Shown here: positions 2,787 through 63,730 of the stretch, piece by piece
Position numbering within the stretch: the first letter of the stretch is position 1
How the letters are laid out: every line of letters begins with the position of its first letter
Assembly (NCBI RefSeq): GCF_036588685.1
Contig: NC_086375.1
Coordinates: forward strand, 55,552,001-55,616,000
Direction of reading: 5' to 3'
Source of the DNA: Mytilus trossulus
Lineage: Eukaryota
DNA: 64,000 nucleotides
Notes under the pieces: model-generated
The model's database searches: none
Told to the model about the DNA's origin: nothing
What the model saw: the letters and a program-made list of their open reading frames with translations, nothing else
Program-made: the position numbers and the translations under genes

Positions 2787-5076
2787 GAGCATACAATATA
2801 GTAAAAAAAAAGCATTTAATCAAGATGACTTTAAGAAGATGACTTAATTAATTTTGCGCATTGTCAAACATTTAAACTTTAGATATTATTTTTGTAAAAT
2901 AAGATTGTCACTTGTTCTTCCGTATTTGGAATAATTAAAGTCAATATATATTGGGCTTTTAACATATTTAGTTACCATAATCGCATATAGTCGTGAAGCT
3001 CTGTAAATAAAATGTCATATTTTTTACTTAACAAGGGTAATTTGGTTTATTTCATTTGCAAAATAAGATATATTAATGAATATGTATGCAGTTAAAAATG
3101 TTTTTCTGAATAATTTTAACATCCGATGTATTTTAAGACATTTTTGACAAACTAAAGATTTGAAATATACTCAGAAGTCTTAAAGTATATCAAATAATAA
3201 TACCCTTCACGTGACAGATGCATGACAATAGGACAAATCGACATCTGTGCAGCCAACAACATGCTTTGCATGGACAATTTCTCATTTAAAATAATAATCA
3301 CTTACTGCTGCTTTCTTAAAATTTTCAAAGATAAACTTATAATAAAAAGGAGAAATATATGTATTTTCATGTTTGTAGATTTTTGAGTTTTAAAAAATAT
3401 GCATTCGAAACATTCACAACAATTGTTATAACTAGGAATAAACAATTTGCATGCACTAAGTTAAGTTGTATAAATTGTAATTTCAAGTATAAATAATCCT
3501 TTATTTTGTGTAACCACTACAATTTTAAGACCCATTACAAAATCGAATGATTCCGCCGCATAACAAAAACAAAATTTAAAAGATAGCAAACTTTTATTAA
3601 CAAATAGAATAGATTTATTTTGTAACTGTTAACACTTCGTCTTTTAAAAATAAAGAAGAGTAAACAAATAAAAGCCTCAATTTATGGCGCTTTACATTGA
3701 CTTCAATATATGCATGCGATTGTTAAATTAGAATTACAATGCAACATGTATACTTATGTTAAAATACATTGTTTAACTATTGATCCTTTTAAAGTCGAAA
3801 GCAAACCGTTTTTTGTTTATATGCAATATAAGACTTTATAAATTTTAAATATCCACCATTATTTGCAAAAGGTTATGTAAACTCTGGAGTTTTCAGATAT
3901 GTTTTTTTAGAGGATGTTATTATTATTGACGCAAAGTTAAACGTTTAAATTCTCCAATTTATACAAATCTGTCGGGAGAGTTACAGGAGCAGATATATAG
4001 AAAACGAAGTACATTGCATAAATACAAGCTTCCAAAATACATAGAACAAATGACAAGCAAAACAAATACAAAAAAGAATTTCAAATCAAGAAATAAATTC
4101 CATTATGTATCATCATGTTGATAGCAAACACTAATGCCCCAAATTTTGTGCAATATGGCAACCCTGACGATGGGATAATTTAACAGTTCATAAATTAATT
4201 TGGCATATGTTTCAATATATATAATACAGCTCTCCTGATAGCTGCAAAAATAACAAACGAGCGAAATGAAAGACGAAGCATAATTAATTATTATTATTTC
4301 AAGACAAATCTATATTATCGGGTTTGGTCATTATAGTGGATTAAACATTTATCAGTAAGCTGTCAGATACAGCTCTCCTATTGTAGTTGACTGTCTGCCA
4401 CTTCAGGATAATGACTACGAGCTGCAAGCATATCTCATTGTTTCTTCAACTCTCGTGAGATGTCGTCCCTAACCATAGTCGGATTCTATTAAAATATCAT
4501 GAAATAACGGTGCCATTTAATACTGGGGATTTTCATATTTGTAATTTTGAAAAATAATCACATTAATGCCGCGACATTTATTCAGGGTTGATAATTATTA
4601 CATCAATATTAATATGTCTCTGCTTATGTAAATGGAAATTAATTTTACACAAACAATATGATCTCTGTTTTGATTACTTTAAGAAAATGAAAAAGTTGGT
4701 AAAATACTATAAAAAAAAATATATATGAAATTTCTAAGCTTTACCGAATGTTATTTTTCATCACTTCTATAATATCTTTCTAATTGTTTATTATTCAAGC
4801 TGACTTCACTCCATGTTGGACAACAGAAGGCTAGCTTTTACTGGATTAAACCCTATAGAATAACATTATATAACATACAGATGGAATAGACCGGTTGTTG
4901 AAACAACAAAATACATTTATTTTAGACCCAACAAAAAATATAAAAAACAAAGAATGCTTCCGAATAAGTTTTTCATTTTTTAAATGATGCATTGATATTG
5001 TGTCGCCATTTTTGTTTCAGATTTTGGAACTTGTGCATTTATGAAATGATTTGACAAATATTTATTTTATTTACAG

Positions 5077-6836: not shown

Positions 6837-6861
6837 TGATATATAATTTTGGTAATATGCA

Positions 6862-7029
6862 TCCAAGTTTTATCTACCATTTTCTACATTTGAAAATGTC
6901 TGTACCAAGTCGGGAATATGACAGTTCTTTTCCATTCGTGTTTTTATGTTTTTTGATTTTGCCATGTCATTATGGACTTTCCGAATTGATTTTCCTCTTA
7001 GTTCAGTATTTTTGTGATTTTACTTTTTA
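6862..7029 (+). mobile_element. Repeat family A 3' fragment (partial twister-like motif)
   Basis: CCATTTTCTACATTTGAAAATGTCTGTACCAAGTCGGGAATATGACAG...GTTCAGTATTTTTGTGATTTTACTTTT, shared with ~10 other copies in the window. Confidence 0.85.
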
Positions 7030-13000: not shown

Positions 13001-13151
13001 GTCATGAGGTTGATCTCCAATTGTTATAATGTCTGAGGAGATTTTCAAAAAAGAAATCAGTATAACTAAACATTGATTATTGAAACCTAATAATATAGAC
13101 ATTAGAATCTCCTGTTTGAGTTGTTTTACAGTATTCATTTGGAACACTCTT

Positions 13152-13440
13152 TATGTATGTGCCTGTCCCAAGTCAGGAGCCTGTAATTCAGTGGTTGTCG
13201 TTTGTTTATGTGTTACATATTTGTTTTTCGTTCATTTTTTACATAAATAAGGCCGTTAGTTTTCTCGTTTGAATTGTTTTACATTGTCTTATCGGGGCCT
13301 TTTATAGCTGACTATGCGGTATGGGCTTTTCTCATTGTTGAAGGCCGTACGGTGACCTATAATTGTTAATATATGTGTCATTTTGGTCTTTTGTGGATAG
13401 TTGTCTCATTGGCAAGCATACCACATCTTCTTTTTTATAT
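13152..13440 (+). mobile_element. Repeat family B (retroelement-like 3' end) starting within a twister-like core
   Basis: GCCTGTCCCAAGTCAGGAGCC at 13161; ends GTTGTCTCATTGGCAAGCATACCACATCTTCTTTTTT. Related fragments at ~11795-11995, 13540-13625, 24205-24290, 38395-38590, 40310-40580, 43478-43740 and 52534-52582, with short 3' stubs at ~7898, 9655, 31852, 43762 and 49670. Confidence 0.85.
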
Positions 13441-16486: not shown

Positions 16487-16712
16487 AAAAAGTAAAATCA
16501 CTAAAATACTGAACTGCGAGGAAAATTCAATCGGAAAGTCCCTATTCACATTGCAAAATCAAATGACAAAACACATCAAACGAATGGACAACAACTGTCA
16601 TATTCCTGACTTGGGACAGGCATTTTCAAATGTAAAAAAACGGTAGATTGAACCTGGTTTTTTTTAGCGCTAAACCTCTCACTTTTACAAATCTCATCAA
16701 ATTCAACGATGT
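16487..16712 (-). mobile_element. Repeat family A copy (degenerate twister-like motif at 16593-16685)
   Basis: Plus strand AAAAGTAAAATCAC...GGAAAGTCCC...AACTGTCATATTCCTGACTTGGGACAGGC...TAAACCTCTCAC. Confidence 0.9.
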
Positions 16713-17015: not shown

Positions 17016-17750
17016 AAAAAGTTAAATAACGAAAATACTGGAATATTCATAACGGAAAGTCCATAATCAAATGATAAAACACATCAAATGAATGGACAAC
17101 AACTGTCATATTCCTGACTTGGTACAATAACTTTTAAATGTAGAAAATGGTGGATTGGACCTAATTTTATAGTGCTAAACCTCTCACTTGTATGACAGTC
17201 ACATCAAACTCCATTATATTTACAACGATGCGTGAACACAACAGATATAATAGGTAAAATTGTCAAAATATGGGTACAGCAGTCATCAGTCACAATCTCA
17301 AAACAAACAAATATTTAACAAAGAAGCATAAAAAGTATCTATCTTTATCAACCACTTTTATTGCTTCGCGTGTTTGATGTCAGAAAATGTAAACGTCACA
17401 CAGAAAGAAATATAAAATTATTTTGTCGTTCAAAGTGTTTAAAAACAAATAGAATTTCACATGAGGAATGGTTGTATTCAGGGTTAAAAAATCCACATAT
17501 TGTTAATACCACTATACGCGAGTAAAATAATTTTGTCGTTCAAAGTATTTTCAAAATAAGAATAGCATAATAATATAATGGCGGGATCCTAAAAAGTACA
17601 GAGCCACGTCATATTTACCTAAGAAACACAAAAAGTCACGCATACAAAACACACCAGCAAAAATGAAAAACATGCATCGACGGGATGTATAAGTACCGAG
17701 CCACGTCAAATGGATATCACAGAAAACAGACCAAACAGCAAACGTACTAA
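17016..17750 (-). mobile_element. Long repeat family A copy with twister-like motif (17101-17200) and internal repeats upstream of it
   Basis: AACTGTCATA (17101) and TATGACAGTC (17191) form an inverted pair bracketing the core. The GTAC(A/C)GAGCCACGTCA repeats at ~17595 and ~17693 also occur in the 44815 copy. Confidence 0.85.
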
Positions 17751-27196: not shown

Positions 27197-27841
27197 ATTT
27201 AGAATTGTTGTTGCGATATGAGTTTTGGAAATCTCTGTGATCTTGAAGCGATTTGGTATAGATGCTATATACCTAAAGACCATGTGCACACATACAATTT
27301 GTTTTTCTCATCTTCAGTTTACAGTCGATGTCTTTCTGAAAATTTACTTTTGAATAAAAAAAATCAAATCATGATAGATGATGTAAAAAACATAAGTTTT
27401 GTTTTTGTTACATTGGACTTCATTACACAAGACAGCGAAAGGAAACTTATCTCAAGCTGTCGTGATTGTCATTTATGGTAATGGTTGACACAATATCTAA
27501 ACCATGATGAACAATATTGAATAAGTTTTCTTTGATTCTTTGCCGGGGTGCTTATACTTTGAATCACTTGAAATTGATAAGAAAGTATTTAATGCAAATT
27601 TTAAATCTGTTCATTGTATTCGAGATCTGCATTGGCTTCGCTATTTTTTGGTGGGTTTTTTTCATCGAACTTCGTTATGGGTTTTTTTTTTTTTTTTTTT
27701 AATTTTAGTGTTTATTGAAAGGCAAATATAGAAACTCGTTTCAACTGGTAGTAGTAATAACAATCAATTCAGAAACACAGTTTTTGATTTTGGCTGTAAA
27801 CATTTGGAACCCAGCAAATGAACTTGTATATCTTTTAATAC

Positions 27842-28041
27842 AAGTGAGAGATTTAGCAAGCTATATATCTAGGTTCAATCCATCATTTTCTACATAAGAA
27901 AATGCCTGTTCCATGTCAGGAATATGATAGTTGTTACCATTCGTTTGATGTGTTTAAGCTTTTGATTTTTGCCATTTTGATTAGGGACTTTTCGTTTTTG
28001 AATTTTCCTCGGAGTTCAGTATATTTGTGATTTTACTTTTT
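27842..28041 (+). mobile_element. Repeat family A copy (degenerate twister-like motif)
   Basis: AAGTGAGAGATTTAGC...GGTTCAATCCATCATTTTC...GAAAATGCCTGTTCCATGTCAGGAATATGATAG...TTTTACTTTTT. Confidence 0.85.
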
Positions 28042-44814: not shown

Positions 44815-45420
44815 ATAAAATCACAAAAATACTGAACTCCGAAGAAAATTCAAAAAGGAAAGTTCCTAATCAAATAGCAACATTTAACTCATCAACCGAA
44901 TGGATAACCTGGTTTGGGACAGGAATTTTCTTATGTAGAAAACGGTGTATTGAACCTAGTTTTAAAGCTAGCTAAACCTCTAACTTGTATGACAGTCGCT
45001 TCAAATTCCATCGAATTGCCAACGATGTGTGAACAAAACAAACAGTCATAAAAGGTAAAAATGTCAACAGTAGGGGTACCGTAATCGTCATTTAATTATA
45101 ATCTTAATCACTATAATAAATAAATAATTATGTAACAAAGAAGCACAAAAAGGCATAAAGACAAATAATGTAGGCACACATAAAAGAAAATAATACACAA
45201 ATTTACCATATCACAATAACGGATGTATAAGTACAGAGCCACGTCATATATGTATCAAAGAAGCATACAAAAAAGCATATAGACAAACCGCATTAGCAAA
45301 AATAAAAGACATTAATACAAAAATGTTTTACAATAGCACAATGACGGGATGATAAGTACAGAGCCACGTCATATATGTATCAAAGAAACACAAAAAGACA
45401 TATAGACAAACCGCATTAGC
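44815..45420 (-). mobile_element. Long repeat family A copy with degenerate twister-like motif and ~125-bp internal tandem duplication
   Basis: AAAATCACAAAAATACTGAACTCCG...TAAACCTCTAACTTGTATGACAGTC; ATAAGTACAGAGCCACGTCATATATGTATCAAAGAA occurs twice (~45227, ~45352). Confidence 0.85.
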
Positions 45421-46677: not shown

Positions 46678-47262
46678 CAAAAGAGGGGGGAAGATACCAG
46701 TGGGACAGCCAAACTCATAGATAAAAAATAAACTGACAACGCCATGACTAAAAAGAAAAAGACGAACAGACAAATAATAGTACAAAGGCACAACATAGAA
46801 CACTAAAGACTAAGCAACACGAACCCCACCAAAACTGGCGGTGATCTCAGGTGCTCTGGAAGGGTTAGCTGATCCTGCTTCACATGTTGCACCCGTGTTG
46901 CTCATGTTATTACAAACTCCTCGATAAATAATCTAACTTGGTTTAGGTCAAATTCGTGAAAAGGGAACGGAATTATAGTTACAACACAAGGAACATGTCC
47001 GATATAATCTGTGAAACGGTTATTCCATAACGGTCAACCAACTCGTGACGGGGTCCGAAAAATTTACGAAGGGTTGATTTCAACTTCACTTTTTGGAACG
47101 CGTGGTTTAATTGCTTCCTTGTGAGCAGCACCCTCCATATGAATTTCAAACATCACCCCTCTTCATGAATTTCTAACAGTATACTACTGTTGCCTTCATT
47201 TAATAGCTTCCTTGTGAGCAGCACCCATCTTTCAAGGAAATCATGAATATCGTATCAATTGT
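46678..47262 (-). mobile_element. 5'-truncated, rearranged Penelope-like retroelement (family C): RT-thumb C-terminus plus 3' UTR
   Basis: Minus frame 47128->46979 reads LLTRKQLNHAFQKVKLKSTLRKFFGPRHELVDRYGITVSQIISDMFLVL*. A duplicated upstream piece (47199-47262) reads QLIRYS/HDFLERWVLLTRKLL. Resembles the PLE thumb signature SQ.xR..R.CS...F......L...L...GY (recalled pattern, no search run). Confidence 0.7.
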
Positions 47263-50200
47263 TTTAATACTTTTGCCAGATGAAAGAGTCTCAGATTGTA
47301 TGTACTCTAAAAGATCTTTGGATATTTTTAGTATCCATATCTGCCACCTCTAGTTTTAGTTTGTTACCCCGATTTTGTTATTGTGCACGGATTTATGAGT
47401 TTGAACCGCGGTATACTACTGTTGCCTTTATTTAGAATGAGCAGTTTCTCCAAAACCTTGAATCCCGGTTTGATTGCTTATAAAATAGATGTTAATAAAT
47501 TAGAAAGAGGTTACGTGGAACACTTGGAAGACCCAGCAATATACCGTTGTTTGTAAGGACACTTATCTAGTTTAGGAATTCAATTCAGTGATGGAAGATC
47601 CAGTTCTTTATCTTTGGAGGAAATTCGAAAGGAAAGGAACATAAAACAGACCTATGATTATCAAGGATTTCCTCTTTGGTAAGTGTCGTGAAGGCATATG
47701 TTGAGTTTTCAAGTGAATTGTCAATAAATAATTCATTTATAAAGCAGTTTATTTAATGAGATTTATACACAAAAACGATTTTATTTGGGATTTATCTGCG
47801 GGGACAACAACATATTTTGTCATGAAGATAGGACAAGTGTTTTGCAACATTTGGGTCTTTACAGTTTGACGTAACATTACGGGTATTGATAGACCCATTC
47901 AGTTTCTTAATTCTGATTTGTATGAAAGAACCTTTTTTTGCGAATTTAAACACATTCCTCATAAGAGTATATTAAAGGCTCAACAGTCACCACATTTTGG
48001 AGATAATATCAATCACATGATCCTGAAATTGACAACATGTAACGCCACAAAACACGAATGCACACAACATACTGCAAAAAGGAATCAGCAGTAATATAAC
48101 TTATCGTATGCTTGACTTAATCGTGGTTTAATTTCGTAAAAGTGAGACATCATGATGGAGATGAGACTCATATGAAGATGCAAAAGGGCTTACCAAATTT
48201 ATACACGTCGATTATTTCCTTTCACTTGACTTACCATAATACTTGATTAAAGTATAGAAAACTATTACATTAATAATTAGAAAACAGAACACTTAGATAT
48301 TATTGTTACGAAATAACTAAAAGGTGGTCTTTTTTGGGGGAATATTTTTTTTATGTATATAAGGCGTATTTTTTATGCAAATGATATATTACACATAAAA
48401 GGACGTTTACATTTAAAATTACCTTGTACTGAAAGAAAAACTATATATACTGAGGGCTCTACTCTCATTTTACTAATAAAGAGGGAAAAAAAGAATAAAA
48501 AAGTGTCAGAATTGCTAAAATGGACATATTTAAACACACAAATGATTCAAACATTTTACTTGATTTTCGTCGATAAGGTAATAGAGATACCAGTGTATAT
48601 TCATATATCGACAATTAGAAGTTATTTGTATGTTTACATTTTGATAATATTTTTCTTCATTGTCTCACGATTTCTTAATAACTTAACGTGGCGTAAATCT
48701 TAAAGCAAATACAAAACGACCATTAATGATCTCTGTATTGACCAACCGCGACCAGTAGCTTAGTAAACGGTACAATTTTGTTTCTTGAATCATTCGTGAG
48801 GAATTTTATTCCGACCGAAGTCACGTATGTTAACCAATATATTTCAAAGGTTTTAAGTTTATATATATATTTATGATATCTCTGACTTAATTCTTTCAAA
48901 AAGGGTGAATATTTGTATAGAAGGAACATACAATTGGCGAAAAACCTTTTACTCCATAGTTGTTCATAAAAATAACTATATGACATTTTGTTCATACATA
49001 CATTTCCGTTTCAATGATGCAAATTGAAGGTAGAGTCGTCGACTTCGTTTTATGCGGTATATATTATTAAAAGCTGGGTTCTTTGTAAAAAAAAAACTCC
49101 CACAAAACTTCGCAATATAGTTAAAGAGGGGCGAATGATACCTTTAGGGAACCGGAACGTCATCGCGTTGCAAGCCATAAAATGTTTTGATGTTTTTCAC
49201 TACAAATAAAGTAACGCATTGATTATTAGACGAAAAAGAAGTCGGTGACCATATATTTATTTTATAGTATTAAAACAGAAATGTATGTGTCAACAACATA
49301 CAGTTTTCTTTTTCTGGACAATTCTGTAGGGTAGAAATTAAAGAATTTTTGATTTTAAGACAAATGTTAGAAGTGTTTTCGCCAATTTTTGGCTTTTTAT
49401 ACTAATATTCTCCAATATTGAAAGACAACAATCTTTTATATTACAGTTAATAAAAGAGATAAATGCATTATTTTTGCGACTGTTGGTTGTAGTTCAACAA
49501 GCCAAGATTGTATTCAAAATTTCAGCAAAATCTGCGACAAAGCCCATTTACTGTCCCTAAACCTTAATATTTTTCATTTATTTATTGTATTGTGTATAGT
49601 TTTTCACAACACTCAGTGAAAGAATATTAATTGGCGATAATCAAGTCACGTTATAGTATTTCAATGTAAAAGAGGAATTGTGGTATGATATCAATGAGAC
49701 AACCATCCGGCAACTGAGTTCAAATGAAGAAGTTTAAAGCAGTAATCAGGCGATATAGTGGTTACAATTTTATTTCTTCAATTACGTATTTCAAATATAC
49801 AGCAGTTTAGATAACTTGATTTTTTTTGTGGCAAGTAATTTAAATATATTAATATACTTTGTAACAAATACTTTTCTTTGTCACCCGAAACCATTCGACG
49901 TCTTGGAATACAACCCGTGTAATTACCAGCACTTTGTCATTTGTGAGTATTTTTTTCTCAGTATTAGATGCGTCATTCTCGTTTCGTATATCCGAAGTGG
50001 GTGTTTTCAATCTCACACAGCGATCGCCCTGGGATATCTAGCATATTCAAACTGAAACAAGCAAATTTTAAACGTTTTTGATGGATCTTGTTAAATTTGA
50101 AGTTTCATTATGATTTGAACAATACTATTTGTGTATTTAACATGGTTTACATATTTGAGGCGGTGTAAATTGGCATGTGACATATCGGCCACAGTTCATG

Positions 50201-50696: not shown

Positions 50697-50853
50697 GAGT
50701 AAAAACACAAAAATACCGAACTCCGAGGAAAATTCAAAAGGAAAATCCAAAATCAAAAGGCAAATCAAAGGTCCAAACACATCAAACGAATGGATAACAA
50801 CTGTCATATTCCTGACTTGGTACAGGCATTTTCTAATGTAGAAAATGGTGGAT
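50697..50853 (-). mobile_element. Repeat family A copy, 5'-truncated at the predicted twister cleavage site
   Basis: Near-consensus 3' half of the motif at 50799-50853; homology stops at GGTGGAT. Confidence 0.85.
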
Positions 50854-52289
50854 GACTATGCTTATAGAGAAGATCTGCTTCATATTCTGATTTGTTCTTC
50901 GATATTGATATATATGGACTACGCCACATAACATTTTATGACAAACGTGAATTGCACTTTTCAAATTGTGGACTCCCATTACGTAACAGAAATTGTCGAC
51001 TCTTATTACGTAACAGTAACATATCATCTTCTCCATCGTATGGTGTTAGAAAATCTTACCGAAAACTCTTGTGCTTGTTCACATTATATGGACTTAACCA
51101 ACAGTGTGCAATTTACACAAACGAAAAGATGCAATATAGTTATTAGAACAATAAATACAATCTTCACTTTATGTTAGTTAACCGATGCGATGTATAAGTG
51201 TCGCAACTCATTGTTTACATGTTTTCGCGATTCTAGATATTTCGATACCAGCATAGTCATCTGATCTGAAACAGCATAGTGTGTCCTTTTCCCGATTGTG
51301 ACATTTTGACTGACTTAATTTACATGTCAATTGATGCATGCGTAGCAAGAAACACACTCATTCGCTCTTTTTGGAGTATACCATTCGATTCCTCCAATTG
51401 TGTTTGTGATCTTTTTTAAATCAACTCACAAGACTTGACCATCCGTTAAATACGGTTGCTAATGTGATATCTCGGAATAAAGGCTACACTGCCTGGTTAT
51501 GTCAGCCAAAAGGACAAACATTATTGCACATCATTAAATAAGAACGTTTTGTGAAATTAATGCTATAGAGAAATAAATACCACCACTATATATCGTGTGT
51601 GATACGATATCGCCTGACTGCAATAGTAATGCAGTTAGATTTCAAGCATATAAAATGTACAAAAAGCCTCAAAAAGAAAAACAAATGGGGAGATGATACT
51701 AAAGGCGTTATACCCTTATGTTGAAAAATTAATCGAACAGAAAAAAAGAGGTCACAAGATACATCACTGAAATCTATAAAACAGGTGTGTAAGGAAGCAA
51801 AAGTGTTAATGTGTAAATTTGATTAATCCTCACCTTTTCTTTGGATTAACCTTCTTCAGATAAAAAAATATTTGAAGCCAATGATGTACGAAAACCGACT
51901 AATAATAAAAGCAATATTTTAACAAAGCTATACTATAAACCATGCAAGTACGGAAGCACTTATTACTGACCTGATGATACCATTGGGACTAACAAACCAC
52001 ACCACAAACTAAGCTTACTGTTTGCGTCGTGTATGTGTTCCAGTTGTTACAATAGTAAACTATAACTATTTTTGTTGTTACAGTAGTAACAAGTGTCCAT
52101 GGCAACAATCTGTATTTAGTTATTATCAAATATGCCAAAATAAGATGACACATCTTTTCCTTAAAATTGACCAAAGTAAACGTAGAATGTTAACCTCTGC
52201 GAGAGATAGATTTTCTGAAATTATTAACACATATCTATCAAATGCTATTGAATGCCTTTCGTCATATTTTTCATAAAATTGCATAGAAA

Positions 52290-52655
52290 AAAAATACTGA
52301 AATCCGAGGAAAATTCAAAACGGAAAGTCCCTAAGCAAATGGCAAAATCAAATGATAAAACACATCAAACGAATGGACAACTGCCATATTACTGACTTGG
52401 TACAGGCATTATCAAATGTAGAAAACGGTGGACTGAACATTGTTTTATAGCGCTAAACCTCTCACTTGTATGGCAGTCGATTCAAATTCCGTTATTTTTA
52501 CAACGATGCGTGAACAAAACAGACAAAATGGTTTACCTTTATAAATTGTTATTTGGATGGAGAGTTGTCTCGTTGGCACTCACACCACATCTTCCTATAT
52601 CTATAGTCGGTAAAATAGTCAAAATATGGTTACAGCAGTCATCACTGTGTTACAA
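52290..52655 (-). mobile_element. Repeat family A copy with twister-like motif (52379-52478) and a nested family B stub (52534-52582)
   Basis: AACTGCCATA / TATGGCAGTC pair (compensatory change versus other copies). Family A homology resumes at GGTAAAATAGTCAAAATATGG after the insert. Confidence 0.85.
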
Positions 52656-59176: not shown

Positions 59177-59736
59177 TCATTTCAAAATATTTATAAAGCC
59201 AGACAAGTAAAAAGTTAGGGAGCATTGAGGATCCAAAATTCCAAAAAGTAGTGACGCTCAGTTCAAAATAGTTATAAAGCCAAACAAGTACAATGGTGAC
59301 GACGACGTGCATTGATAACCCAAACATCCATTTCAAGAGTATTTGGTGCGTATCATTTAAAGTGAATTCATTTACTAAATTTCATTGTTTTAAGCAGACT
59401 TAACATTATCAATGGTATCTTTTATTTCAGGTTAAGTGAATAAATATGAACAACAATTAACCTTCCAAATATTCAGGTAGAGGGTATAGCTGAACGTGAT
59501 GTTTAAAGATCATGGAAAAATATGATATCATTGGCGTACGCCTTGCATCCTCTTTTATTTGTTATAATGGTTGATATTTCGCACTAAATAAAAAAAAACA
59601 GACATCAAAAGGAAGAGTAATATATATATAGTACGAAGTGAAGACACGATTCTACCCTTTTTTGTTCAGAATAGTGAATAGTAAGAATTATATGAGTGGT
59701 GGTCATTTTCCAATTAGCGATTTGGTCCATAAATGT

Positions 59737-59920
59737 GGTTAGCGCTATAAAACCAGGTTTAATCCACCATTTTCTACATTTGAAAATGCTTGTGCTAAGT
59801 CAGGAATATGACAGTTCTTGTCCATTCGTTTTTGATGCGTTTTGTATTTTAATTTTGCCATGTTGGACTTTCCAAATTGATTTTCCTCTTAGTTCAGTAT
59901 TTTTGTGTTTTAACTTTTTT
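59737..59920 (+). mobile_element. Repeat family A copy (5'-truncated twister-like motif)
   Basis: TTAGCGCTATAAAACCAGGTTTAATCCACCATTTTCTACATTTGAAAATGCTTGTGCTAAGTCAGGAATATGACAG. Confidence 0.85.
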
Positions 59921-60403: not shown

Positions 60404-60835
60404 TTAAAATTATAATCCTGGTACTTTTGATAACTATTATTGATGGTCAAGAAGACTTATGTATAAATCTCCAAAACTGGTGCTAATAGATTGTTTTAGT
60501 AAATACATCTTGATAGATTTATAAGTCAAATTATAAATGAAAATGCATACGTTTTAGGGATTTCTTTAGCAAAGGATATACTTCACCAGACGAGGATATT
60601 GTCAACGTAGAATCTCATATCATTTAAATTAATATACATGTATATCGACAGCTGTCAAAATCACATTTTTATAAATGTGGTTGTAGATATCCTATTTCAA
60701 TTTTTATCCGAGAGCATTCAATTTCTAAATATAGAGAACATTTGTCAAAGCAAAAGTTTCGATTTGGCAATCATCCCCAAAAGAAAATCCAGAAAGAAAA
60801 CACAAGCCATTTATAAAAAAAACCTACTGGAATGT

Positions 60836-61648
60836 AAAATTGAGAATGGAAATGGGGAATGTGTCAAAGAGACAACAACCCGACCAAAATAAAAAAAACA
60901 CAACAGCAGAAGGTCACCAACAGGTCTTCAATGTAGCGAAAAATTCCCGCACCCGGAGGCGTCCTTCAGCTGGCCCCTAAACAAATATATACTAGTTCAG
61001 TGATAATGAACGCCATACTAATTTCCAAATTGTACACAAGAAACTAAAATTTAAATAATACAAGACTAACAAAGGCCAGAGGCTCCTGACTTGGGACAGG
61101 CGCAAAAATGCGTCGGGGTTAAACATGTTTGTGAGATCTCAACCCTCCCCCTATACCTCTAACCAGTGTAGAAAAGTAAAAGCATAACAATACGCACATT
61201 AAAATTCAGTTCAAGAGAAGTCTGAGTCTGATGTCAGAAGATGTAACCAAAGAAAATAAACAAAATGACAATAATACATAAATAACAACAGACTACTAGC
61301 AGTTAACTGACATGCCAGCTCCAGACTTCAATTAAACTAACTGAAAGATTATGATTTCATCATATGAACATCAGGCACAATCCTTCCCGTAAGGGGTTTA
61401 GTATCATACCATCATAACATATATGAGAAGAACATAACCCGTGTCATGCCAACAACTGTTTTTAGAATAAATGTGTTTAGTTCCGACGCAAAGACCTTAT
61501 CAGTGACTCAATATTAACGCCAAAATATGCAATCTTTAATGACTTGACAACAGTATCGTAATTATATCCCTTCTTAATAAGTCTATTCAAAGGTTTTGTA
61601 AGTGTATGAGGTGAATACTGACACCTTTGTGCTTTATAAAGAATATTT
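60836..61648 (-). mobile_element. 813-bp 5'-truncated retroelement (family E) with 13-bp TSD, ORF C-terminus and 3' UTR
   Basis: CCTACTGGAATGT at 60823-60835 and 61649-61661. Minus frame 61650->61477 is open: GNILYKAQRCQYSPHTLTKPLNRLIKKGYNYDTVVKSLKIAYFGVNIESLIRSLRRN*. 3'-end stubs are dispersed elsewhere in the window. Confidence 0.88.
61074..61164 (-). ncRNA. Candidate twister ribozyme, type P5
   Basis: GGUUAGAGGU-AUA-GGGG-GAGGG-UUGAGAUCUCACAAACAUGUUU^AA-CCCC-GA-CGCA-UUUU-UGCG-CCUG-U-CCC-AA-GU-CAGG-A-GCCUCUGGCC. P5 (10 bp including G-U), P2 GGGG/CCCC, P3, P4 CCUG/CAGG, T1 CCC/GGG, conserved N^AA and GAGGG. T2 has a mismatch here and P1 is non-canonical. Confidence 0.75.
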
Positions 61649-62077
61649 CCTACTGGAATGTGTATTCTTCATTTGTAAATGCCTTTTCAAAAGTGAAAAA
61701 TCACAATGAGAAAATTAAAGGTCATTATTAGAAAATACTTTTTAGTAGAAATAAAAATGTATTAAAATTAAAATCAACAGACAAGTGCTTCTTACACCAA
61801 GATTATGATTTGACGTTGGCAAATAATTCCTTTCATCCTGATTTTTTTTTCTGTATGAATGATTAATTAATATGTCAAAATTCGATCTCAAAAAGGCCAG
61901 ACTTTCTATGATTCATATCTACTGTCAATTTACATCACGGTGAAATAAAGGCATTGTTTGGTTTGTAGATTTTCTCGCTGTGTTGGAGACACATTGGTGG
62001 CTTTAGGCTGTATGTTTTTTTACACATTGGTAAGGTTGTTGTCTCTTTGAGACATACCCATTTCCATTATCAATTTT

Positions 62078-63483: not shown

Positions 63484-63730
63484 AACAAAAATATTGAACT
63501 CTGAGGAAAATGTAAAACGAAAAGTCCTTAATCAAATGGCAAAATCAAATAAAACATATCAAACAAATGGACAACAACTGTCATATTCCTGAGTCGGTAC
63601 AGACATTTTTTTAATCGTAGAAAATGGTGCATTGAACCTGGTTTTAGAGTGCTAGACCTCTTACTTGTGTGGCAGTCGCATCAAATACCATCATATTTAC
63701 AACAATGTGTAAACAAAACAGACATAATAA
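63484..63730 (-). mobile_element. Repeat family A copy (twister-like motif at 63576-63677, degenerate)
   Basis: AAAAATATTGAACTCTGAGGAAAA...AACTGTCATATTCCTGAGTCGGTACAG...TAGACCTCTTACTTGTGTGGCAGTC. Confidence 0.85.

Follow-up and report, generated by a model that had tools for sequence, protein, structure and literature searches.

A candidate type-P5 twister ribozyme variant in the tails of Naiad-type Penelope-like retroelements

A window of the genome of the mussel Mytilus trossulus (64,000 nucleotides, the whole stretch analysed; assembly GCF_036588685.1, contig NC_086375.1, positions 55,552,001 to 55,616,000 of the forward strand, numbered below from the first letter of the window) contains a copy of a Penelope-like retroelement of the Naiad type, the tail of which encodes an RNA with the fold of a type-P5 twister ribozyme (61074-61164, minus strand). 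Helices P2, P3, P4 and P5, both pseudoknots (T1 and T2) and the invariant catalytic nucleotides of the twister are present in this RNA; P2, P4, T1 and T2 are supported by covariation across independent Naiads, and compensating changes have preserved the twister fold in much of the Naiad radiation. Judged from these sequences, the tail, or pseudo-long terminal repeat (pseudo-LTR), of Naiad elements is likely to encode a sense-strand type-P5 twister RNA that self-cleaves, possibly as a dimer. We propose more tentatively that Naiads may use a twister in which helix P1 is replaced by two palindromes, with cutting only when two copies pair. The original prediction made on this DNA, of retroelements with a 3'-located twister in the place of the hammerhead, is supported: the elements are Naiads, the fold covaries, and a canonical hammerhead is missing.

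Read on the minus strand, the fold in the window copy consists of P5 (61164-61155 paired with 61083-61074), the joint J (AUA, 61154-61152), P2' (61151-61148), the GAGGG strand (61147-61143), a segment at the position of P1 (61121-61141), P2 (61118-61115), the two T2 bases (61114-61113), the P3 hairpin (61112-61101), and P4 (61100-61097 paired with 61088-61085) with its loop UCCCAAGU (61096-61089). Within the GAGGG strand, G61147 is the equivalent of Oryza sativa twister G45, and T1 is formed from 61145-61143; the segment at the P1 position is made up of palindrome 1 (UGAGAUCUCA, 61141-61132), one C, and palindrome 2 (AAACAUGUUU, 61130-61121), which takes in the U before the cut. The scissile bond is predicted between U61121 and A61120, according to the alignment to the UAA of the Twister-P5 consensus and to the Oryza sativa twister, in which the cut falls at U6-A7 and G45 is the general base (PMC6154101). 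A P5-type fold with U^AA at 61121/61120, a distance of about 240 nt from the 3' end of the element and a mismatch in T2 had all been foreseen: the fold was borne out at 61164-61074, the distance was measured as 238 nt, and the mismatch is a real, private C-to-A change at 61113, which breaks the near-invariant T2 pair C14-G30, the C (in GCC) being present at the equivalent position in 53 of the 57 genomic copies read. The window copy, which carries this private change, is probably inactive.

The proposed comparison with twister models succeeded in part. On pieces of 161-171 nt, Twister-P5 (RF02684) was the sole Rfam match, the window copy scoring 19.9 bits and the majority form of the family 23.1 bits, but both scores lie below the gathering cut-off of 37.6 bits. 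Every upper-case position of the Twister-P5 consensus (GAGGG, UAA, GC, GUCCCAAG) is matched in the majority form; the score is lost at the P1 hairpin, which is unmatched and the positions of which are skipped in the Rfam alignment, and at the P3 hairpin, which is inserted. An Rfam search at E<=10 over 33 kb of Naiad loci missed twisters that were recovered by the 171-nt search, and a search of the whole genome with RF02684 gave no match but is uninformative, as the controls gave no match either. Two custom models, R1 (built from six close sequences) and R2 (built from 17 diverse sequences), scored 94.7 and 63 bits on the window fold, respectively.

Covariation was assessed in 23 distinct Naiad sequences parsed by anchors, P3 and P5 being assessed per sequence by script. 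The order of parts is the same in 23/23: P5, A-rich joint, P2', GA(G/A)G(G/U/A), palindrome 1, A-rich linker, palindrome 2, Y^AA, P2, two bases, P3 hairpin, P4, the loop UNCYAAGN, P4', A, and P5'. Pair 1 of P2 is paired in 23/23 with five pair types, while at pairs 2 and 4, C-G is found in nearly every sequence; P4, paired in 100% of the cells of alignment A6 (below), has three types at pair 1 (A-U, C-G, G-C) and two at pair 3 (C-G, U-A), and its loop of 8 nt is of the UCCCAAGC type, the loops reading U(C/A/U/G)C(C/U)AAG(U/G). T1 is paired in 88% of cells, 27-47 being C-G in 20 sequences and U-A in three from two lineages (L058/L059 and L064), and 25-49 occurring as C-G, G-U, A-U and U-A; T2 13-31 is C-G in 9 sequences, G-U in 5, A-U in 4 and unpaired in 5, and T2 14-30 is C-G in 22/23. 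P5 helices of 5-17 bp, unrelated in sequence, are found in 22/23, and neither the length nor the sequence of the P3 hairpin is fixed. The AA after the predicted cut is invariant, the nucleotide before it (N-1) being U in 19 sequences and C in 4.

A plain MAFFT alignment of 17 sequences (A6; L088, L096 and L106 left out), in which the equivalent of G45, the general base, and the next A are invariant, was scored against the structure with both pseudoknots: 90.0% of cells are paired versus 74.3% when shuffled, and the covariation score is 0.419 versus 0.139, neither value being equalled in 500 shuffles (0/500 as high). Controls with slid partners remained at 50% paired or less, with a score of at most 0.104, and seven of the 13 pairs change on both sides. 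In a model-based alignment of 31 distinct rows (A7), for which the model had neither T1 nor T2, 87.6% of cells are paired versus 72.9% shuffled, with a score of 0.344 versus 0.119. Covariation, the lack of which would have counted against the original prediction, was found in P2, P4, T1 and T2.

The segment at the place of P1 has a structure of its own. The 20-25 nt between GAGGG and U^AA reach 0 to -3.3 kcal/mol when folded alone, their ends never being paired; the segment of the window copy is unstructured as a monomer and reaches -15.4 kcal/mol as a homodimer, and across the palindromic segments homodimers range from -12.5 to -23.5 kcal/mol, with a gain of 13-20 kcal/mol versus 6-8 kcal/mol for shuffles. 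Palindrome 1 stands directly after GAGG(G/U)U and is perfect over at least 8 nt in 21/23 sequences, with 18 different sequences; palindrome 2 (AACCGGUU, AAACAUGUUU, AAACGUUU and others) ends at or takes in the U before the cut. Palindrome 1 is not accounted for by a hairpin, because its central bases covary too. The palindromes suggest that two RNA copies may pair through them, with a helix forming at the position of either P1 strand, much as for the minimal hammerheads of other Penelope-like elements, in which the loop is palindromic and which reportedly cleave as dimers (PMC6765202). Since it scores below the Twister-P5 cut-off and is without P1, the motif is a twister variant and not a canonical member.

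Independent relatives were taken from metagenome contigs: 80 Naiad loci were picked by protein similarity of the reverse transcriptase (RT) alone (99-33% identity), so that the sample is unbiased towards the RNA. At E<0.01, R1 gave 27 matches and R2 gave 35 in these loci, 34 of the 35 R2 matches being on the sense strand, mostly 80-690 nt downstream of the RT match. Three loci also carry the motif upstream of the open reading frame (ORF), as expected for a pseudo-LTR, and the lone antisense match is an inverted upstream copy, which is a known structure of Naiad elements (PMC8557442). Among the 26 loci in which RT identity reaches 48% or more and the downstream sequence 450 nt or more, 25 have the motif, as do about 6 of the 24 more distant loci with enough tail. 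Positive loci fall in three well-supported clades of the RT tree (a quick version, with some long branches), one of which is positive throughout, wherever this could be judged, except for L071. By 70% RT identity, BLAST aligns no part of the 3' untranslated region (UTR) except the twister core.

The element itself was classified from its genomic copies, 23 of which were extended; homology from the 3' end spans 837 to 4839 nt, and the longest copy, L046, was used as full-length reference. In L046, a complete unit of 4017 nt is immediately preceded by a partial copy of 822 nt, which is a pseudo-LTR arrangement, and the 5' end of another unit was found directly after two of the copies; as in Naiads, the insertion is partial-tandem with a pseudo-LTR, the unit falls within 3.4-4.4 kb, and 5' truncation is frequent. 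A single frame of L046 (...GIQYVGET...NWIKKLQTVYPLGLN...TSCNCSN...PADKAANN...IPMGTNCAPL...YLDD) carries, in this order, GIY-YIG-type motifs (GIQYVGET...NWIKKL...GLN), CxC, DKA (PADKAANN), and RT motifs (IPMGTNCAPL, YLDD). Naiads are marked by an N-terminal GIY-YIG joined to a C-terminal RT by a CxC linker, and by DKA replacing DKG [as described in PMC8557442]. No significant Pfam domain was obtained with the ORF pieces of the element, and the classification therefore rests on motifs and architecture, by which the element is a Naiad-type Penelope-like element; full-length elements and a class for the RT, both called for at the outset, were thus obtained. Hammerheads gave no match in the element, in the window at the Rfam gathering cut-off, or in 22 Naiad loci.

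The L046 frame (full-length copy L046:3165-6176) has four in-frame TGA codons in places of conserved Cys, at 3327, 3420, 3453 and 4728; the TGA at 3453 stands for the Cys before GIY-YIG and that at 4728 lies 8 aa after DKA, exactly the two positions at which selenoprotein Naiads have UGA (PMC8557442). A SECIS-like element begins 52 nt past the stop codon of the window copy (61361-61425, minus strand; Rfam SECIS_1, 32.8 bits, E 0.0002, below the cut-off of 35), with equivalent SECIS-like matches of 30.9 and 28 bits in the relatives L055 and L057. The element family encodes a putative selenoprotein. Selenoprotein Naiads have been reported from two clams and two spiders only (PMC8557442); the UGA at the same two positions and, probably, the SECIS-like element after the stop are shared with them, whereas the host here is a mussel, the SECIS match is just under the Rfam cut-off, and no ribozyme is reported in their paper (PMC8557442). 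A second Naiad family was observed in the same genome (G000:C10:3519328-3520746 and about 90 other places), with an uninterrupted frame of 482 aa in most scored copies, 65% identical to P0025.

In the window, the element copy occupies 813 nt (60836-61648, minus strand) between two identical target-site duplications of 13 bp (CCTACTGGAATGT), read directly at 60823-60835 on the 3' side of the element and at 61649-61661 on its 5' side. The end of the RT ORF, with 57 codons and a TAA stop at 61479-61477, lies at 61477-61648 (minus strand; translation and tblastn) and is 98% identical to residues 379-436 of the L046 RT ORF (tblastn); duplication and ORF end both agree with what had been read earlier from the DNA. 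The 3' end of the element reads ...CATTCTCAATTTT(A), without poly(A). Other genomic copies share this 3' end and continue upstream with the same sequence beyond the window copy, which is for this reason regarded as 5'-truncated. A DNA search of the 1.3-Gb source genome with the element gave 4573 first-look candidates; the 40 of these that were scored are 99-100% identical to the window element, and by this measure the family is a young, high-copy one. On the sequence features above, the window copy is a fossil, 5'-truncated Naiad-type Penelope-like retroelement of a putatively selenocysteine-encoding kind. The pseudo-LTR of the full-length copies L044 and L046 begins (L046:1979) 5 nt upstream of the truncation point of the window copy (61648); the proximity could be accidental or reflect a preferred 5' end, and the position differs from the twister cut site.

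The following course of events is proposed. A twister-fold RNA in the 3' UTR, repeated upstream of the ORF as the pseudo-LTR in full-length insertions, would cut its own transcript between U and AA, trimming transcripts begun in or upstream of the 5' pseudo-LTR and freeing unit-length RNA, the job that has been proposed for the hammerheads of other Penelope-like elements. The two palindromes in the place of P1 would not fold within one molecule and would pair well between copies, so that the ribozyme may work, or be gated, as a dimer, either in tandem on one transcript or between two RNAs. Rejoining of the ends left by a twister (5'-OH and cyclic phosphate) could yield circles, and these would be in keeping with the partial-tandem insertions, along the lines proposed for elements that bear hammerheads (PMC6765202).

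Several observations weigh against a self-cleaving twister. Helix P1 is absent; the majority form of the family scores 14.5 bits under the Twister-P5 gathering cut-off, and the whole 64-kb window gave no match to Rfam at gathering. When the monomer is folded to minimum energy, GGGUUGAG and UUUAACCC pair with each other and the cut site is buried. Pair 3 of P2 is a mismatch in 11/23 sequences, and T1 25-49 is U-U in the largest clade; the shuffled controls ignore the relatedness of the sequences, while the slid control keeps relatedness and fails clearly. About 18 of the 24 RT-distant loci with enough tail have no match: a search with filters off in 19 Naiad loci (18 RT-distant loci and L071) gave no motif, and Rfam gave no other ribozyme there, no twister-like motif or Rfam ribozyme being found in the 460-2900 nt past the RT of L071, L089, L097, L102-L105, L108, L110, L111, L114, L115, L117, L122, L127, L129 and L132. 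Genomic copies, including that in the window, keep 285 nt past the predicted cut; because these nucleotides are kept in inserted copies, the RNA that was copied must have been uncut there or rejoined, which fits inefficient cutting or the need for a second copy.

The same 285 nt favour the strongest alternative, according to which the twister fold has been kept and cutting has been lost, the RNA now serving as a recognition site for the RT of the element or as a dimerisation site. The RT is a relative of telomerase and may bind pseudoknotted RNA; otherwise, dimerisation could favour template switching and partial-tandem insertions. Uncut RNA would then be the template of the insertions, the palindromes are like dimer-linkage sites, P1 is absent with an Rfam score below the cut-off, and the module is kept in short non-coding tail copies that need mobilisation in trans. 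Against this, the G45-equivalent, the next A and the cut-site AA do not vary across clades, N-1 is always a pyrimidine, and these invariant nucleotides matter for catalysis more than for folding; moreover, P1 is reported to be conserved but dispensable for twister cleavage (PMC6154101). We regard a non-cutting RNA as rather unlikely.

Considerably less probable is an ordinary monomeric twister with palindromes unrelated to catalysis, which would be protein sites at the DNA level or a by-product of sequence history. The dispensability of P1 (PMC6154101) and the presence of all core features would allow it, but palindrome 1, perfect over at least 8 nt in 21/23 with 18 sequences, points to selection for self-complementarity, including central bases unneeded by a hairpin loop, and it lies exactly at the place of the 3' strand of P1, with palindrome 2 at the place of the 5' strand. 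Very improbable, finally, is a chance likeness, in which a shared hairpin (CCUG UCCCAAGU CAGG), for example the core domain of a short interspersed nuclear element, would have no twister fold: although no Rfam match reaches the cut-off and one tail-family copy in the window (13127-13178) keeps the hairpin only, this explanation is contradicted by the covariation of P2, P4, T1 and T2 in A6 and A7, far above shuffled and slid controls, by the placement of nearly all matches on the sense strand downstream of the RT, and by fuller copies of the hairpin-only family, which have the rest of the module.

The type-P5 twister ribozyme was reportedly described by Roth et al. in 2014. With this class (RF02684; structures reviewed in PMC6154101) the Naiad RNA shares the succession of P5, A-rich joint, P2', GAGGG, the P1 position, U^AA, P2, GC, P3, P4 and P5', together with the loop UCCCAAG(C/U), the T1 and T2 pseudoknots, the general-base G and the cut-site A. 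It differs in having two palindromes instead of an intramolecular P1; in the last base of the loop, where U or G predominates and the T2 partner has changed accordingly; in the frequent mismatch at pair 3 of P2 and the Rfam score of 23 bits against a cut-off of 37.6; and in its location in the tail of a eukaryotic retroelement, in hundreds of thousands of copies on a rough count. The pseudo-LTR minimal hammerheads of canonical Penelope-like elements (Cervera and de la Pena 2014; Lunse, Weinberg and Breaker 2017; reviewed in PMC6765202) belong to the same class of elements and resemble the Naiad motif in their location in the pseudo-LTR or 3' region on the sense strand, and in a palindromic stretch at the place of the closing helix that points to a dimer of two copies; the Naiad motif, in contrast, has the twister fold, and the Naiad clade is reported to be without canonical hammerheads (PMC8557442). 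Known retroelement twisters occur at the 5' end of Perere-3 long interspersed nuclear elements (LINEs) of Schistosoma (PMC8501958): there, too, a twister-class ribozyme is carried by and transcribed with a retrotransposon, but in Perere-3 the target-site duplication is part of P1 and cleavage has been shown experimentally, whereas the Naiad motif lies in the 3' UTR or pseudo-LTR, is without P1, and is predicted to cleave.

The paper that defined the Naiads noted the missing canonical hammerhead, asked whether ribozymes matter for these elements, and never mentioned the twister (PMC8557442). In a literature search combining twister with Penelope-like, Naiad, Mytilus and bivalves, no twister placed in a Penelope-like element was found, a passing mention in the original twister paper being possible; the motif is not annotated by Rfam either, and the suggestion that the system is undescribed stands to that extent.

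Penelope-like elements are a major and poorly understood class of retroelements, and Naiads dominate many invertebrate genomes. Should the self-cleaving twister hold true, the ribozyme slot would have been kept in Naiads with the fold alone differing, which would partly answer the question raised in the Naiad paper, and this would be the first twister tied to a Penelope-like element and a natural variant without P1, perhaps in hundreds of thousands of copies in one genome. It would also be a second, independent, palindrome-gated and probably dimeric ribozyme: the hammerhead and the twister, which are unrelated catalytic folds, would have reached the same dimer-gated design in two Penelope-like lineages, and the selected property would be the sensing of a second copy (tandem or pseudo-LTR transcripts) and not the class of ribozyme. 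The role of ribozymes in the mechanism of tandem insertion becomes directly testable, and a very large eukaryotic group would be missed by the Rfam twister models.

Further modules of the same kind are found elsewhere in the window. The core CCTGTCCCAAGTCAGG occurs 10 times with at most 3 mismatches, versus 0.05 expected, and R2 gave 11 matches at E<0.01; besides that at 61074-61164, the matches fall in short tails that belong to other Naiad families. The commonest tail family, which closely resembles the motif of Naiad locus L093, has a GAGGU/UACC T1, a UAGCGCUA palindrome, C^AA and a P5 of 9-12 bp; it is found on the minus strand at 16604-16686 (61.5 bits with R2; GAGGU strand, palindrome UUAGCGCUAA, C^AA), 52390-52469 (47.6 bits) and 17112-17191 (40.9 bits; 12-bp P5 GTGACTGTCATA/TATGACAGTTGT). 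Decayed modules lie at 27840-27921 (plus strand, 40.8 bits), 59729-59805 (plus, 38.9 bits), 44907-44988 (minus, 37.7 bits), 63587-63668 (minus, 28 bits) and 6843-6915 (plus, 19.5 bits), and a decayed or 5'-truncated one at 50810-50886 (minus, 23.4 bits). A third tail family is represented at 13127-13178 (plus, 20 bits) by a copy truncated within P3, with the P4 hairpin and the 3' part of the module; a fuller copy of this family at L035:4716-4794 (minus strand) has GGAGGG, the palindromes and UAA. Four repeat families had been thought to share the core: the core is indeed common to all, but not the core alone, because the fuller copies carry the remaining parts and the families share the whole homologous module (GAGG strand, palindromes, YAA, P2, P3, P4 and often P5).

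A degraded remnant of a Naiad RT was observed at 46997-47603 (minus strand), 47-67% identical to pieces of the RTs of L093 and L098 and with no match to the custom twister models. Over the whole genome, R2 gave roughly 404,000 first-look candidates, all 150 of the 150 that were scored being significant; on this rough count, the module is perhaps present in hundreds of thousands of copies in one genome.

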